NCBI GenBank assembly: GCA_020137815.1
Contig: CM035356.1
Coordinates: 3,286,001-3,350,000, forward strand
Length of the DNA: 64,000 nucleotides
Direction: 5' to 3'
Source: Hormiphora californensis
Lineage: Eukaryota > Animalia > Ctenophora
The notes below the pieces were generated by a model. That model had not been told where the DNA came from, made no database searches, and saw nothing but the letters and a program-made list of their open reading frames with translations. Within the stretch, counting starts at the first letter, position 1. Each line of letters opens with the position of its first letter. Below are positions 49,191-56,605 of this stretch, piece after piece. Both the position numbers and the translations under genes were made by a program.

Positions 49191-49699
49191 ATAATTAATT
49201 TAGCTAATATTAGCTAGTTGATTAACTAGTTAATTTGCTAATTAGCTAGTTCATTTAACTAATTAGCTAGTTAATTTGCTAACTAACAGTAATTACATTT
49301 ACACCTGATTATTTCACCCCAATGAGAGAGATCCTAACCTCGAGTTGATCAAAAGACAATTTATTAAACCCTCCTTCCTCTCTCTCTCTTTATGATGACA
49401 TGACATTGTCATTGACAAAGTCTGAGATTCTGTTTTCCTAAATTATGGACAATTATAAAACTAACGGGTCAAATTGCAGCATTTTGACCTGCCTGTTTTT
49501 TCATGAGATTGAGATGAGCTGTTTTTTGATGGACAATTCGATTTGATAATTTTAAATTTAATGGGATTAGAGCTAAGGAGTAAACTTGAATAGTTCAAAC
49601 TTTTTGCCCAAGTTTTAATTGATTGTCTTCTGTGTATCAAGCAAAAGGAATGATCCATAATAATATGAATAACGATTCAATAATCGGTGCATTAAAAAA

Positions 49700-49932
49700 G
49701 ACCTTTGCGCTTGCCAGCGTAGTGATGTAACGCGCGGTAAAATATTTTCGTATGTGCGCGGCGTTAAGTTGCTTTTAAACACCGCGCGCTCAAAATAAAA
49801 TGAGAAAATGGAGATGAGAACTTTTTTACGCGCACATTTTTTAATTTTTTGGTCGTTTTCGTGTGTTTTTTTAAAGTTCGGGTCTCGGGACGCGGAAAAG
49901 AGAAACTGAAGGCTTCCTGGGCAAAACTTTAG
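49700..49932 (+). promoter_or_regulatory. Putative promoter of the XYLB/DTYMK/RFC2 cluster with CGCG/E2F-like motifs
   Basis: A local cluster of acgcgcgg, gtgcgcgg, ccgcgcgc, tttacgcgc and cgcggaaaa (49891) sits in AT-rich DNA between the RhoGAP stop and the XYLB ATG. Confidence 0.4.
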
Positions 49933-49940
49933 CCATTAAA

Positions 49941-52425
49941 ATGAGTACAGAAGGTCAATTGTTCCTGGGCTTTGATCTCAGTACTCAAAGTTTGAAATGT
50001 GTTGTCCTGGACGGGGCGTTATCCATCGCACACGAAGTATGTTTATCTCCTTTCCCCCTTTTCTGGCCGTCTTTCAGTATATAAACTATCCAATATGGCA
50101 GGAATCGGTTGTATACACTCGGGATTTACCCTCCTACCAAACTACTGATGGATTTCATAAGTCTGGAAACGTCGTTACGTCGCCCACTACCATGTGGATT
50201 GAGGCGCTCGATTTGCTGCTCGATCGACTTTCAAAAAGTGTGGCACTAAGCTCAGTAAGTTAATGTAATTGTCTTGTGTGTAGCACATGGCTTTAAAGCG
50301 TGGGATTTTTGTTGTCATTGAAGGTGCCGATGGGACAGGAAAATCAACGCAAGTTTTAAGACTGACGCAGAGGTTGATAGACGATGGATTTCCCTGTATT
50401 AGCATGAGGTAAGGTTTCATCATTTTCCTAGTAACTCTAAATTTGTTTAGGCTGATTCGTGCGACAAAGTTCACCCTAAATAAAACTCCCTAAATGAAAC
50501 TCCCTAAATGAAACTCCCTAAATAAAACTCCCCTAAATAAAACTCCCCTAAATAAAACTCCCTGAATAAGACTCCCTAAGTAAAACTCCCTAAATAAAAC
50601 TCCCTAAATAAAACTCCCTAAGTAAAACTCCCTAAATAAAACTCCCTAAATAAAACTCCCTTAATAAAAGTTCCTAAATAAACCCTTCTCCCAGGTTTCC
50701 AGATAGAAGCACACAGATAGGAGGAATGATTGATAGTTATCTAAAGTGCCAATCCGACATTAGCGATGAAAGTGTGCACCTTCTATTCTCTGCGAACAGG
50801 TGGGGGATTCAAATAATCAGTGTGTTTGTTGGGCAAAAATCTCAAATATATGTATATGGAAGGGAATTATTTATTCCAGCTGGACGATTTATCCCAGTCA
50901 AGACACATTATTCTCGCTCAGGTGGGAGTTGAAAAAGAAGCTACTAGACACACTGAACTCTGGAACCAGTGTAGTATGTGATAGGTATGCATTCTCTGGT
51001 GTTGCATATACCTCTGCTAAACAAGGATTCACCCTTCCATGGTGCATGAACCCTGATCGAGGTAAACAAACACGTTTCTATCTTGTGAAGTGACTTCCGT
51101 TCTAGTACTGTACAAGGGGGGGGGGGGCGCTATCTTGCTGCTATCTTACCCATCGTCTATCTTGATTCTTGTGCAGCTCCGGAACGAAAAAACTAAACAA
51201 TTCTTCGTTCATACAAAAAATATTTTGATTAACATTCCCTTGTTCGACCCTCTTTCTCTCTCTCTCCTCGCCCCGTGAATCCGAGTTAGTTAACTAAACA
51301 TCAAAAGGCTAAAATTTACTAACCTATTCCTCCGCAGGACTGCCACAACCAGATAGGGTTATCTACTTGACTGCCTCTGAAAAACTAGCCAAATCCAGAT
51401 CTGATTTTGGGACGGAGCGATATGAAAAAGCGGCCTTCCAAAAGCGTGTCTCAGAGCGGTTTGCGGAGATCTCTAAGAAGGACCCTAATTTAGATTGGGT
51501 TGAATATGAGGTGGAGAAGGACATTGAAGGTGTTACCGAGGATTTGAGGGGCTTGATAGACGTTCAGAATTTGTCACAGAGCGATATTGGACTGCTGTGG
51601 GATAAATGTTGATTTCAATTCGTGTGTTAATATTGAACAAATGTTGATTTGTTGATGCTTTGAATTAGTTAATGTTACATATAACTATTGTTTTAAGGAT
51701 CAATTAAATAATTGTGTTCTCTTATTACTCTCCCTCAATCCCCTACCTGACCTCATCCCTCTCTCCAGGTGATTGGTATTGGTGGATGTGCCCAGCAGCA
51801 TGGAACAGTCTACACCACCCACTCCTTCCTATCAACTCTATCCAACCTGGACGCCGCCCAACCCCTCCTACCTCAGTTGGGCAGTCTGTTTGCAGTGCCC
51901 AACTCTCCGATATGGATGGATGGAAGTACTGAGGAGCTTTGCAAGGTGATATATAATGGTGTACCAATGGTGTTGTGTGGCTCACACCGCATTTTTTCAC
52001 GCTACGTGACAGTCCCGTGTTCATGAACACGGTGAATTCACCAAACGACAATGCATTCGTTAAAATAGTAAGTAGTTTATCAACAGATGCCTATTATTTC
52101 AGGAGATGGAGATATCGGTGGGTGGAGCAGTCAAGTTAGCAGCTCTTACCGGCTCTAAGGCTCACTGTAGGTAATTGATTATAGCACTGGCAAATGTCCC
52201 GGGCCCTATGATTAATATTGTAATAAATAAAAATCTAGAATTCACCTCCAGGTTCTCAGGCCACCAAATCCACAAGGTGATCAAGGGTGGAATCTGGGAG
52301 AAATTAGAGAGGGTGATGTTAGTTAGCAACTTTCTATGTTCTCTCTTTACTGGTATCTACTCCTTCCCCGAACTCAGCGATGCTAGTGGTAAGAAGGCCC
52401 TACTTTTAGTTTTCTCTTTCACACA

Positions 52426-52498
<73 letters not shown>

Positions 52499-54302
52499 CC
52501 TCCCCTCTCTCTCAGGTATGAACCTGTTGAATATCAAGACGAGGGAATGGGATGAGCACCTCTGTACTCTCTCTGGGGTTGATGTTCGTAACAAACTAGG
52601 ATCACCAGCACCTGCCATTCCAGAGGTACTGTACCAAGGTTTTAAATCTAGACAAACATGACGAATATGATTCAAAATTGTACAAAATGGAACCAGAGTC
52701 CTGGGGTGATATGATTTCCCACCAGATCATTTCTCTCGCTATACTGAAAAGTAATTTCTATTGCAGGAGCCCATTCTAGTTAGCAGATACATGGTACAGA
52801 GGTATTCCTTTTCCCCCACCTGTGCGGTATCTAGATTTGTAGGGGATAATCCTTCAACCTTGATTGGTCTAAATCTGGGCAAATCAGACATCGCTCTGTC
52901 ACTGGGTGAGTTTAAATGGTTTAGTACTTGATTTGATTATGTTTTAATAATTCCTCTCTAGTTCCCCCTAGTTACTCCCTATTTACCCCCTATTTACCCC
53001 CTATTTACCCCCTAGTTACTCCCTAGTTACTCCCTAGTTACCCCTACTCCCTAGTAACTCCCTAGTAACACAGCCCCCCCCCCCTGTTAGGTACAAGTGA
53101 TGTAGTGGTGAGGTGTGGTGATGATTTGACACCCTCCCCTAACACCCACACCTTCTATCACCCCCTAGTTACCCCCTAGTTACCCCCTAGTAACCCCCTA
53201 GTAACACACCCCCTCCTCTAGGTACAAGTGATGTGGTGGTGAGGTGTGGTGATGATTTGACACCCTCCCCTGACACCCACACCTTCTGTCACCCCCTTCA
53301 CCCCCACACCAGCTACATGCAGATTCTCTGCTATAAGAATGCCAGTCTCACAAGGTAAGGGGGTCATAGACAAAACGAGTTGGAGATTAATTCAGTCTTC
53401 GCTCATAATCTTATCAGTGTGCTGAGCACACTGTGCTCATGTATCACATGTTGAAACAAAGAGTTCTCAAAAGCTGAACTGTCAATTTATTGATTTAGTA
53501 TCATTTATATATCGTTGTTAAAAAGCATGATTTTGATTGATAAATCTCTGTTTCCAGGGAAGAATTGAAAACAAAGTACTGCAAAACAGGCACATGGGAG
53601 GAGTACGGAAAGATAATTAGAGAGACTAATACACCTCTTGTTTCTGCTTACTTTCCACACCCTGAAATACTGCCATTCGGTGTTTCTGGGGCGTACACTT
53701 CGGGTTAGTTAATTTCAAGTTTTCGACCGGATAAAATGTCGAGTTCGAGTTACCGACTGTTCGTAATTTTGTCCCAAATCCAGTTAAAACTGCTCTAAAA
53801 AGTATATTAGACATTTTGAGGAATTTATAAATTATACATTCCTTGACCGCACAACATGTTACTTTTCATGTTAATTATTATGCTAATTATCATGTTTGTA
53901 CCTGTATAACCTAACACACAACATCACTGTGTAGGTGACGGAGACCTCTGGGAACACCCTTCTTCAGACATCATCACCTCCATCACCGAGGGACAATTCC
54001 TATCCCAATCCCTCCACACCTCACCTCCACCATCTCGACTAGTGGTAGTGGGAGGTGCTAGCTCTAATACCCCTCTACTGGAACTAATCAGTAACGCCTT
54101 CTCCTGTCCTGTGTACCGGAATGTAACAAGTAATGTGGCAGCACTGGGTGGTGCGTATCTTGGTGTTATTGCTGCAGGGAGGCAGGTTCCTTCTACTCAG
54201 GGGTGTTGGGAGCTTGTTGCTCAACCTGATGAGAGTAGGAAGGGAGAGTGGGATAGGAAGAGAGAGGAGTATCGAGGACTGGAGGCAACCTTTCGTGATT
54301 AG
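49941..54302 (+). CDS. XYLB: Xylulokinase (FGGY family), ~508 aa. Exons 49941-50036, 50102-50254, 51769-51945, 52103-52170, 52252-52388, 52516-52625, 52767-52905, 53222-53354, 53558-53703, 53935-54302
   Basis: Motifs [115 protein letters not shown]. The exons sum to an in-frame 1527 nt. Confidence 0.92.
50287..51612 (+). CDS. DTYMK: Thymidylate (dTMP) kinase, 213 aa, nested in XYLB intron 2 on the same strand. Exons 50287-50408, 50695-50799, 50922-51061, 51338-51612
   Basis: [23 protein letters not shown]-loop, [53 protein letters not shown]. All GT-AG, 642 nt in frame. Confidence 0.95.
50474..50682. repeat. 14-15-bp minisatellite (ctccctaaataaaa) in DTYMK intron 1
   Basis: About 14 tandem units ending just before the acceptor at 50694. 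Confidence 0.9.
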
Positions 54303-54518
54303 TAATGATTTAAACTGAATTTATGGTTTGTGTGTGTCTTACATTTTGGGATTTATAATGCATGTTTTCAAATGTGTATTACGTTACGATTATTGCCTCT
54401 TTATCTCTCGACTACTGCACCATACATGATCTCTATCCATGGTGTATCAAAGCAAAGTTAAGGTGTAGACAAAGTTTATTAACTATTGTAACGGCCCCTT
54501 CTCTAGCCCCAGTAGATC

Positions 54519-56605
54519 ATGACAATGGAGGTAGATGAAGTAGCCAAGGAGAATGTGAAACCAGTGAAGAAGATGAAACTAACGCAGGAACTACCTTGGA
54601 TCGAGAAACACAGGCCCAAGTAGGAGAATGTATAATAACCTATCATCTATGAGCACGTTATAATTTTGGTGATTTTCGTCACTGATCTGCCCAACCTACC
54701 ATAGCCATGTATCGTGCTGAGTCTGAGAATTACATGTACTAACATCAAACATGTACTAACATCTAATCCCCCCAGGTACCTGCCTCAAATTGTGGGCAAT
54801 GAAGACACGGTGAAGAGGTTGTCTGTATTTGCAGAAGAGGGAAACTTGCCTAACATCATTATCGCTGGTCCACCCGGTATTGGAAAGACAACCACTATAC
54901 TCTGCCTTGCTAGGGCGTTACTAGGTAACTGTTTTGGGCACGTCGCGCTATCCCCTGTACATCCCCGACGAAGTTGGCAGCTTCGCTGCCAAGTAACTGT
55001 TGCATGCTAGAGCGTTGCTAGGTAACTGTTGCTAGAGCGTTACTAGGTAACTCTTGCTAGGGCGTTACTAGGTAACTGTTGCTAGGGCGTTGCTAGGTAA
55101 TTGTTGCTAGGGTGTTGCTATGTAACTGTTGCTAGGGTGTTACTAACAACACTGTATCAGGTACCGCATTGAAAGAGGGAGTTCTGGAGTTGAATGCTTC
55201 AAACGAGAGAGGCATTGATGTGGTGAGAAACAGAATCAAGATGTTTGCTCAGAAGAAAGTGACTCTTCCCCCGGGTGAGTATTTTAGTGACGTGTGACGT
55301 CATCACCTGTGACGTCATTGTTTCAAATCACAAGATTCCAAGTACTAAGATTAACACACACACGTCATACTACCCATCCAATTAACATTAACATATTATT
55401 GTGTCTATCAGGTCGCCACAAGATATCTTAAGATATCCCATTAACATTGACATGTCTCCCCCAGGTCGCCACAAGATGGTTATTCTTGACGAGGCTGATT
55501 CCATGACCTCAGCAGCTCAGGAGGCACTCCGGCGAACGATGGAGATATACTCCAAAACTACACGGTTTGCTCTAGCATGCAATACCTCCGATAAGATAAT
55601 TGAACCGATACAGTCCCGGTGCACCATGCTGAGGTGAGTGAGGCTGCTGAATATATCAACCCGATAGAATATGTCCTTTATTGCTCATGTGGTAACCCCT
55701 CGTATCTAGGTATTTGTCACCATGGCAATCCCCCTTATCTAGGTATTCAAAAGTAACAGACGCCCAGATGTTGGGTCGTCTCCTGGAGATATGTGACGCG
55801 GAGAGTATCGTAAAGACAGATGACGGCCTGGAGGCTATCATCTTCACCGCACAGGGTGACATGAGGCAGGCGGTGAATAACCTTCAGGCAACATACCAGG
55901 TACAGACGGATAGGGTGTACCAAAAACACTTCTTCCATCACTCTCTTCCTCCTTATTTCCCCTTCCCCCACGACTAATCCTATCCCTTCCCCCGTCCACC
56001 TCCCTACCCCCTCCTTGTAAGTAAGTATGTTGATCCTTACTCAACAACAACTAACACCCCTCCCCCTCCTCAGGGTTACGGTATAGTGAATGGTGTGAAT
56101 GTGTTCAAGGTTTGCGATGAGCCCCACCCCCTGTTAGTCAGGGACATGTTGACTAAATGTCAGGAGGGGGATATTGATGGGGCCTACTCCATTCTTCACT
56201 CCCTCTGGAAGTTAGGATACTCCCCGGAGGATATCATCAATAACATCAGAAAGGTGAGTTTACAAATCAAAACACGAGTTTAAAGAAACCTACTGCGGAG
56301 AAATCCCATTTCTCTGTAGAGTTCTCCCTGAGGATCAATTCCATACACAATCACAGTGAAAGGTGAGTATTTGTTTAGTCAGCATTAGCCTGACAGCCTT
56401 TTTAGTTTTAAAATCCCCCCTCAACACTTCTTCTTCGTCCCAGGTGTGCCAGACGCAAGAGATGCCCGAATACCTAAAGCTACTCTATCTAAAAGAGGTC
56501 GGATATGCCCACCTGAGGATTAGTCAAGGCGTCAACTCCCTTCTTCAGCTTAGCGGACTGCTAGCTAAACTTTGCACAGTCACAACAGCCAAATCAATGT
56601 CGTGA
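54519..56605 (+). CDS. RFC2: Replication factor C small subunit 2 (40 kDa; yeast Rfc4 orthologue), ~343 aa. Exons 54519-54619, 54776-54924, 55161-55274, 55465-55633, 55743-55899, 56074-56253, 56444-56605
   Basis: [121 protein letters not shown]. The exons sum to 1032 nt. Confidence 0.96.

Follow-up and report, generated by a model that had tools for sequence, protein, structure and literature searches.

How is a gene expressed when it starts 32 nt after an exon of another gene, inside an intron of that gene and on the same strand? The question is raised by a locus of the ctenophore Hormiphora californensis, where a thymidylate kinase gene (DTYMK) occupies the second intron of a xylulokinase gene (XYLB) and a third gene, RFC2, follows 216 nt beyond the XYLB stop codon. 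The window analysed is a 64 kb stretch of contig 7 (bases 3,286,001-3,350,000), and coordinates below refer to this window. Gene models were built by translating three reading frames, placing exon ends at GT-AG boundaries and adding up exon lengths, with homology searched exon by exon; genome-wide searches covered the assembly of 110.69 Mb in 45 contigs. The nest is real and unusually tight, and the locus is a candidate operon.

The nest of DTYMK in XYLB

The locus is compact (6.7 kb) and consists of three complete genes on the + strand, XYLB, DTYMK and RFC2. All reading frames are intact, the catalytic motifs are present, the exon sums are divisible by three (1527, 642 and 1032 nt, respectively) and the whole-genome search gave one copy of each gene. 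The host and the nested gene are arranged as follows.

49941-54302, + strand: XYLB, 10 exons, 1527 nt, 508 amino acids, defined by splice boundaries and length arithmetic
49941-50036, + strand: XYLB exon 1, 32 codons, ending in phase 0, donor GTATGT
50102-50254, + strand: XYLB exon 2, 51 codons, ending in phase 0
50255-51768, + strand: XYLB intron 2, the host intron, 1514 nt, donor GTAAGT (50255-50260), acceptor ctctccAG
51769-51945, 52103-52170, 52252-52388 and 52516-52625, + strand: XYLB exons 3-6
52767-52905, 53222-53354, 53558-53703 and 53935-54302, + strand: XYLB exons 7-10
50287-50408, 50695-50799, 50922-51061 and 51338-51612, + strand: DTYMK, 4 exons, 642 nt, 213 amino acids, PF02223
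50255-50283, + strand: donor-to-acceptor interval, 29 nt, from GTAAGT to ttgtgtgTAG (50281-50283), 3 nt before the DTYMK ATG

Matches on both sides of the host intron identify the host as a xylulokinase of the FGGY family, orthologous to XYLB. Exon 1 encodes GFDLSTQ, the N-terminal motif of the sugar-kinase fold. Exon 2 matches residues 37-83 of human xylulokinase 4bc2 (E = 9e-8) and the last exon matches residues 409-493 of the same protein, which is the sole solved-structure match in both cases; the last exon is also matched by Pfam FGGY_C. Because exons 1-2 encode residues 1-83, a functional XYLB must be spliced across DTYMK. Acceptors were scored with a position weight matrix built from 18 cis acceptors of XYLB, DTYMK and RFC2 and compared with all 5208 AG dinucleotides of the window. 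The host intron acceptor before 51769 scores 18.2 (100th percentile) and is the best of the set, and the donor GTAAGT of this intron is a consensus one.

The four exons of DTYMK match, in colinear order, positions 1-24, 31-64, 70-113 and 117-182 of the Thymidylate_kin profile (PF02223), and no other PF02223 locus was found in the genome. The motifs GADGTGKST (P-loop) and CDRYAFSG are present and exon 4 matches human TMPK 1e2d (E = 1e-10). Judged by these features, DTYMK is a functional single-copy gene. Its coding sequence, from the ATG at 50287-50289 to the stop at 51610-51612, lies wholly within XYLB intron 2 and takes up 1326 of the 1514 nt (88%), so that DTYMK is a nested intronic gene in the sense of Schultz et al. 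2021, with its coding sequence in one host intron.

Little sequence is left on either side of the nested gene. The 32 nt between XYLB exon 2 and the DTYMK ATG include the 29-nt interval, which contains TTAAT, a branch-like motif, and an ATG-TAA of a single codon. On the 3' side, the distance from the DTYMK stop to XYLB exon 3 is 156 nt (51613-51768). This flank contains ATTAAA at 51703-51708, followed by a GU/U-rich stretch, and it extends over the branch site and pyrimidine tract of the host acceptor. A preliminary description of the locus had given the end of exon 2 at 50254, the GTAAGT donor, the acceptor at 50283, the ATG at 50287, the stop at 51612, the resumption of XYLB at 51769 and an attaaa near 51703, and all of these positions proved exact. 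Its claim that the intron leaves no room for a DTYMK promoter is likewise borne out by the 32 nt. Since these are all that lie between exon 2 and the ATG, transcription of DTYMK starts in or upstream of XYLB exons 1-2, and a DTYMK transcript without a spliced leader (SL) must have a 5' end that overlaps the host exons.

Could the two genes be one? A fusion of XYLB and DTYMK was considered, as the reading frames agree, and it was rejected. In the three genes, the 18 introns other than the host intron measure 65-316 nt, which makes cis-splicing of a 29-nt interval implausible, and the DTYMK orthologues of ctenophores have no XYLB-like N-terminus. A profile search recovered full-length ctenophore DTYMK proteins, among them KAL5271721.1 of Mnemiopsis leidyi, and the orthologues also include P0153, P0159, P0161, P0280 and P0281. 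Most of the full-length proteins start with MALKRG, as in H. californensis. A Mnemiopsis model (P0276) and an open reading frame (P0280) are longer, with additional N-terminal residues unlike XYLB.

A sister genus, assembled independently, has the nest as well. When the full library was searched with DTYMK exon 4, it returned P0001, the EukProt entry for the Pleurobrachia bachei gene model sb|3472963|, which is a computed model and not RNA. It contains DTYMK exon 4 (93% identical, as far as QYE) leading directly into XYLB exon 3 and then into the intron that follows that exon. The model uses a donor whose equivalent in H. californensis is the following.

51511-51516, + strand: GTGGAG, junction GAG/GTGGAG at 51510/51511, in frame, inside DTYMK exon 4

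As DTYMK exon 4 is followed by XYLB exon 3 in the P. bachei model, the same-strand nest is no misassembly and occurs in more than one member of the family; the preliminary description had proposed conservation in other ctenophores as a check. For the 5' side of the nest, a search with DTYMK exon 3 for a P. bachei model gave only unrelated protist-like proteins. The explanation that the nest is an artefact, either misassembled or containing a dead copy of one of the genes, has a negligible probability and nothing was found in its favour. It would have to account for three intact frames with catalytic motifs in genes that are each the sole genomic copy, for an XYLB that requires splicing across DTYMK, and for the same order of exons in P. 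bachei.

DTYMK intron 1 consists mostly of a 14-nt minisatellite (CCCTAAATAAAACT, 14.8 units; 50474-50682). The repeat brings ten AATAAA words, on the transcribed strand, into the nested as well as the host precursor. XYLB ends with the stop codon TAG (54300-54302), which is the first of three in-frame stops in a row (54300-54308), TAG TAA TGA, representing all three kinds.

Candidate start regions for the nested gene

With transcription of DTYMK placed in or upstream of the first two host exons, the composition of this region becomes important. Two elements were found.

49701-49900, + strand: candidate shared promoter patch, CpG-dense and CGCGC-rich, directly upstream of the XYLB ATG
50078-50085, + strand: TATA box TATATAAA, perfect consensus, in XYLB intron 1, 202 nt before the DTYMK ATG

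The patch at 49701-49900 contains 20 CpG (observed/expected 2.35), which makes it the densest 200-nt interval of the 64 kb, and 7 of the 28 CGCGC matches in the window. No comparable CpG patch precedes RFC2, and in composition 49701-49900 is the sole promoter-like sequence at the locus. S-phase control through E2F was tried as a candidate and rejected, as the promoter patch contains no match to the consensus TTTSSCGC.

The explanation favoured here is that XYLB and DTYMK are made from one precursor. Transcription would start at the CpG-dense patch (49.70-49.90 kb), which is needed by XYLB anyway, and the precursor would then take one of two routes. In the first, the donor at 50255 would be joined to the strong acceptor at 51768, giving the XYLB mRNA. 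In the second, the SL would be added at the TAG at 50281-50283 and the RNA cleaved after ATTAAA 51703, giving the DTYMK mRNA. The routes would be mutually exclusive, as XYLB exons 1-2 would be discarded as an outron upon SL addition, and the host donor 29 nt upstream would be unable to use the 50283 acceptor in cis. An SL-CACATGGC junction in mRNA is predicted. This model, in which the two genes share a start region, the SL is added at 50283 and polyadenylation in the intron competes with host splicing, is proposed tentatively, all of its RNA steps being inferred, and has a probability somewhat short of even.

The TATA box could instead drive a separate start for DTYMK. According to this alternative, DTYMK starts at its own promoter in the 5' region of XYLB, for example about 30 nt past TATATAAA at 50078, in exon 2, and RFC2 starts in the spacer or in the last XYLB exon. 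The locus would then consist of three overlapping independent units, in which an SL might still be joined at 50283 and 54512. A perfect match to TATAWAAR in the 65-nt XYLB intron 1 speaks for such a promoter, since the 12 matches in the window (both strands) correspond to about 0.02 expected per 250 nt on this strand. For RFC2, a further CpG-richer patch with 10 CpG in 53600-53799, in XYLB intron 9 and about 800 nt before the gene, points in the same direction. Same-strand nested genes of other animals normally have promoters of their own, which also counts in favour. On the other hand, S-phase housekeeping genes usually lack a TATA box, TATA-like words arise by chance in AT-rich introns, and the elements of an internal promoter would occupy conserved XYLB coding sequence. 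The XYLB promoter, moreover, lies just about 300 nt further up, and its transcripts would cross the same acceptor regardless. Taking both sides together, internal promoters appear somewhat unlikely.

At 50072-50101, XYLB intron 1 also holds an extra acceptor-like site, ctttcAG, which ends at 50077, 24 nt before the exon 2 acceptor, and overlaps TATATAAA. Its use would keep the frame and add YINYPIWQ.

Acceptors and the spliced leader

The SL is ubiquitous in H. californensis and was found on at least 56% of its Iso-Seq reads (Schultz et al. 2021, PMC8527503). A search with the 26-nt 3' part of the published SL gave 640 genomic copies with up to two mismatches and none with the reversed control sequence, and none of the copies lies within the 64-kb window. 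SL trans-splicing, a premise of the preliminary description, is thus well founded in this species, both by the 640 copies and by the published reads.

Seven ATG triplets lie upstream of the DTYMK start (49941, 49997, 50039, 50095, 50148, 50192 and 50263). A 5' untranslated region of DTYMK that started upstream would keep six or seven of them unless it were cut away at 50283, which speaks for use of this site; SL addition there would dispose of six. The acceptor at 50283 falls at the 70-78th percentile of the AGs of the window. The acceptor of XYLB intron 9, ctgtgTAG, resembles it, and since that site is used, such sites do work in this genome. The AG site before the XYLB ATG is at about the 53rd percentile.

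Together with the TATA box, several observations weigh against the shared precursor with SL addition. The 50283 acceptor scores below each of the 18 cis acceptors and is unlike the TTTCAG/CAG sites kept in SL-bearing genomic copies. The preliminary description had pointed to an AG within about 10 nt of all three ATGs. This is literally true and carries little information, because 53% of the 995 ATGs of the window have an AG no more than 10 nt upstream, so that a full set of three would arise in 15% of cases, which is chance level. In another ctenophore the intronless DTYMK open reading frame P0280 is preceded in frame by 50 residues that resemble no frame of XYLB exon 2. As XYLB exon 2 is missing from these 150 nt, the tight 5' geometry is probably not phylum-wide. 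Finally, operons are not reported in ctenophores (PMC7986045), and a phylum with no known operon favours internal promoters as well.

The acceptor at 50283 could also be used without the SL. In this alternative it would be joined in cis to the XYLB exon 1 donor at 50037, across a 247-nt intron, or to a non-coding exon in the CpG patch, and DTYMK and XYLB would be alternative-splice products of one gene-like unit. The ends of XYLB exons 1 and 2 are both in phase 0, and the CAC-ATG at 50284 stays in frame with no stop; the donor in DTYMK exon 4 is likewise in frame with XYLB exon 3. Each of these agreements, however, has a one-in-three chance of arising. The 33-residue XYLB-derived extension that would precede the P-loop has no counterpart in ctenophore orthologues, and the exon 2 acceptor at 50101 is far stronger than that at 50283. 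A leader spliced in cis is therefore considered improbable.

Translation from a dicistronic mRNA offers another way around the SL. Such an mRNA would carry XYLB exons 1-2 with the start of intron 2 retained, and DTYMK would be translated by reinitiation or leaky scanning. The XYLB frame does end at TAA 50261-50263, after 6 nt of intron, with the DTYMK ATG another 24 nt on. Reinitiation past an 85-codon open reading frame and several intervening ATGs would be inefficient, though, and it is unlikely for an essential single-copy enzyme, which leaves the dicistronic mRNA highly improbable.

A search for sequencing runs covering 49500-55499 gave no listed run that contains the locus; in the one small run that was listed, only a minisatellite fragment could be placed. 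Metagenome scans with the DTYMK exon 4 protein and with an exact 30-mer of DTYMK exon 1 were blank.

The genomic SL copies have a structure of their own. Among those sampled on contigs 1-2 (L001-L006, L009-L068), GT comes next in only 8 of 68. The other 60 run into repeated sequence families, often with an ATG 2-12 nt past the SL, and variants of one SL-bearing family start 3-6 nt apart (SL-GAAGATG vs SL-CAGGAAGATG; SL-CAACATGG vs SL-TTTCAGCAACATGG). Most of the sampled copies look like retroelement copies of SL-trans-spliced RNA rather than SL RNA genes, to judge from their flanks, and such an origin would change the reading of the 718 'leader loci' of the genome paper. As a calibration of the distance from SL to ATG the SL-bearing copies were rejected, being mostly repeated element families, and they were used qualitatively only. 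In L005, L018, L051, L057 and L062 the SL is directly followed by CTGATGA, a short hairpin and GAAAC, which resembles the core of a hammerhead ribozyme; 12 loci, including four of these five (not L062), gave no Rfam match at gathering score.

RFC2 and the operon question

Would the proposed shared precursor extend to the third gene? RFC2 and the sequence that separates it from XYLB are described by these features.

54303-54518, + strand: XYLB-RFC2 spacer, 216 nt, GU-rich after the stop
54491-54515, + strand: candidate SL acceptor cluster, a pyrimidine tract and AGs at 54505-06, 54511-12 and 54514-15, 3-12 nt before the RFC2 ATG
54519-54619, 54776-54924, 55161-55274 and 55465-55633, + strand: RFC2 exons 1-4
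55743-55899, 56074-56253 and 56444-56605, + strand: RFC2 exons 5-7

RFC2 has 7 exons (1032 nt, 343 amino acids) with the stop at 56603-56605, and its ATG at 54519 agrees with the distance of 216 bp from the XYLB stop given in the preliminary description. The gene encodes the Walker A, Walker B and SRC motifs. The best match of an RFC2 exon is human RFC2 6vvo_B (E = 2e-21), followed by yeast RFC4, its orthologue, at 3e-9. These similarities identify the gene as RFC2 rather than another small RFC subunit.

RFC2 is the only one of the three genes with strong candidate acceptors before its ATG, unpaired and 6-12 nt away. With first exon bases at 54507 and 54513, they reach the 97.6-98.8th percentile of AGs and the 99th among ATG-proximal sites. 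RFC2 very probably receives an SL, which would most likely be added at 54506 or 54512. Read-through from XYLB as the source of the RFC2 precursor would be the least certain step and is doubtful. The spacer contains neither a + strand AATAAA/ATTAAA nor a CpG patch. The lack of a poly(A) signal says little because the 3' flank of RFC2 is also without AATAAA/ATTAAA. A full three-gene operon, as put forward in the preliminary description, is unlikely. It would have one promoter at 49.7-49.9 kb, a binary switch between a pentose-metabolism mRNA (XYLB) and a dTMP-kinase mRNA (DTYMK), formed by a donor and by an SL acceptor 29 nt from it, and RFC2 made by read-through.

The three-gene unit is isolated from its neighbours, which counts in favour of the shared precursor. 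Upstream, a RhoGAP gene ends about 3 kb before XYLB with no recognisable coding sequence between them. Downstream, the end of a large convergent gene lies 444 nt past RFC2.

Exon junctions of XYLB and RFC2 have been duplicated in four cases, affecting XYLB exon 8 and RFC2 exons 2, 4 and 5. A copy of the XYLB exon 8 acceptor with the first 76 nt of that exon lies 131 nt upstream in intron 7, at 92% identity (53078-53166 vs 53209-53297); the duplicate has no donor and is flanked by an 11-nt minisatellite (CCCTAGTTAC). The donor junction of RFC2 exon 2 and intron 2 (GCTAGGGCGTTACTAG/GTAACTGTT; 54899-54933) is copied inside intron 2 as a minisatellite (55005-55145) of 5.6 units of 25 nt, each with the donor-like CTAGGTAAC. 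For RFC2 exons 4 and 5, the acceptor and first exon bases have a decoy copy in the same intron, 53 nt upstream (55386-55424 vs 55439-55477) and 33 nt upstream (55690-55714 vs 55723-55747), respectively.

Same-strand nesting is not in itself new. The genome paper counted 2357 nested intronic genes in H. californensis and stated that many are parallel to their hosts (Schultz et al. 2021, PMC8527503), which weakens the novelty claimed for this geometry in the preliminary description. The parallel nested genes of that paper are likewise complete genes in one host intron on the same strand; the paper gives no locus-level account of them. What sets the present nest apart from them is a start 29 nt past the host donor, an end 157 nt before the host acceptor, an intron filled to 88%, no space for a promoter and a third same-strand gene 216 nt on. 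The locus is notable mainly for this extreme tightness and adds a well-annotated example to a class already described in the genome paper.

With the SL-resolved operons of nematodes, tunicates, chaetognaths and Hydra the locus, a candidate operon, shares closely spaced, unrelated genes on the same strand, an organism with an SL, and unpaired acceptor-like sites before the downstream ATGs. It differs from those operons in having one cistron inside an intron of the first, so that a transcript would give either the host or the nested mRNA and not the two in succession. Mammalian intronic polyadenylation isoforms provide another parallel, a poly(A) site that is bypassed for the host mRNA (here ATTAAA 51703, about 65 nt before the host acceptor). 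In contrast to these, the product terminated in the intron would be an unrelated protein with an SL-derived 5' end and not a truncated isoform of the host.

With donor and acceptor 29 nt apart, a single transcript is predicted to yield one or the other of two unrelated enzymes. Were shared transcription demonstrated, the locus would be a test case for how a host is separated from a same-strand nested gene in a trans-splicing animal, and it would bear on whether ctenophores have operons at all. If the operon is true, it would be the first demonstrated in Ctenophora, with its second cistron inside an intron of the first.

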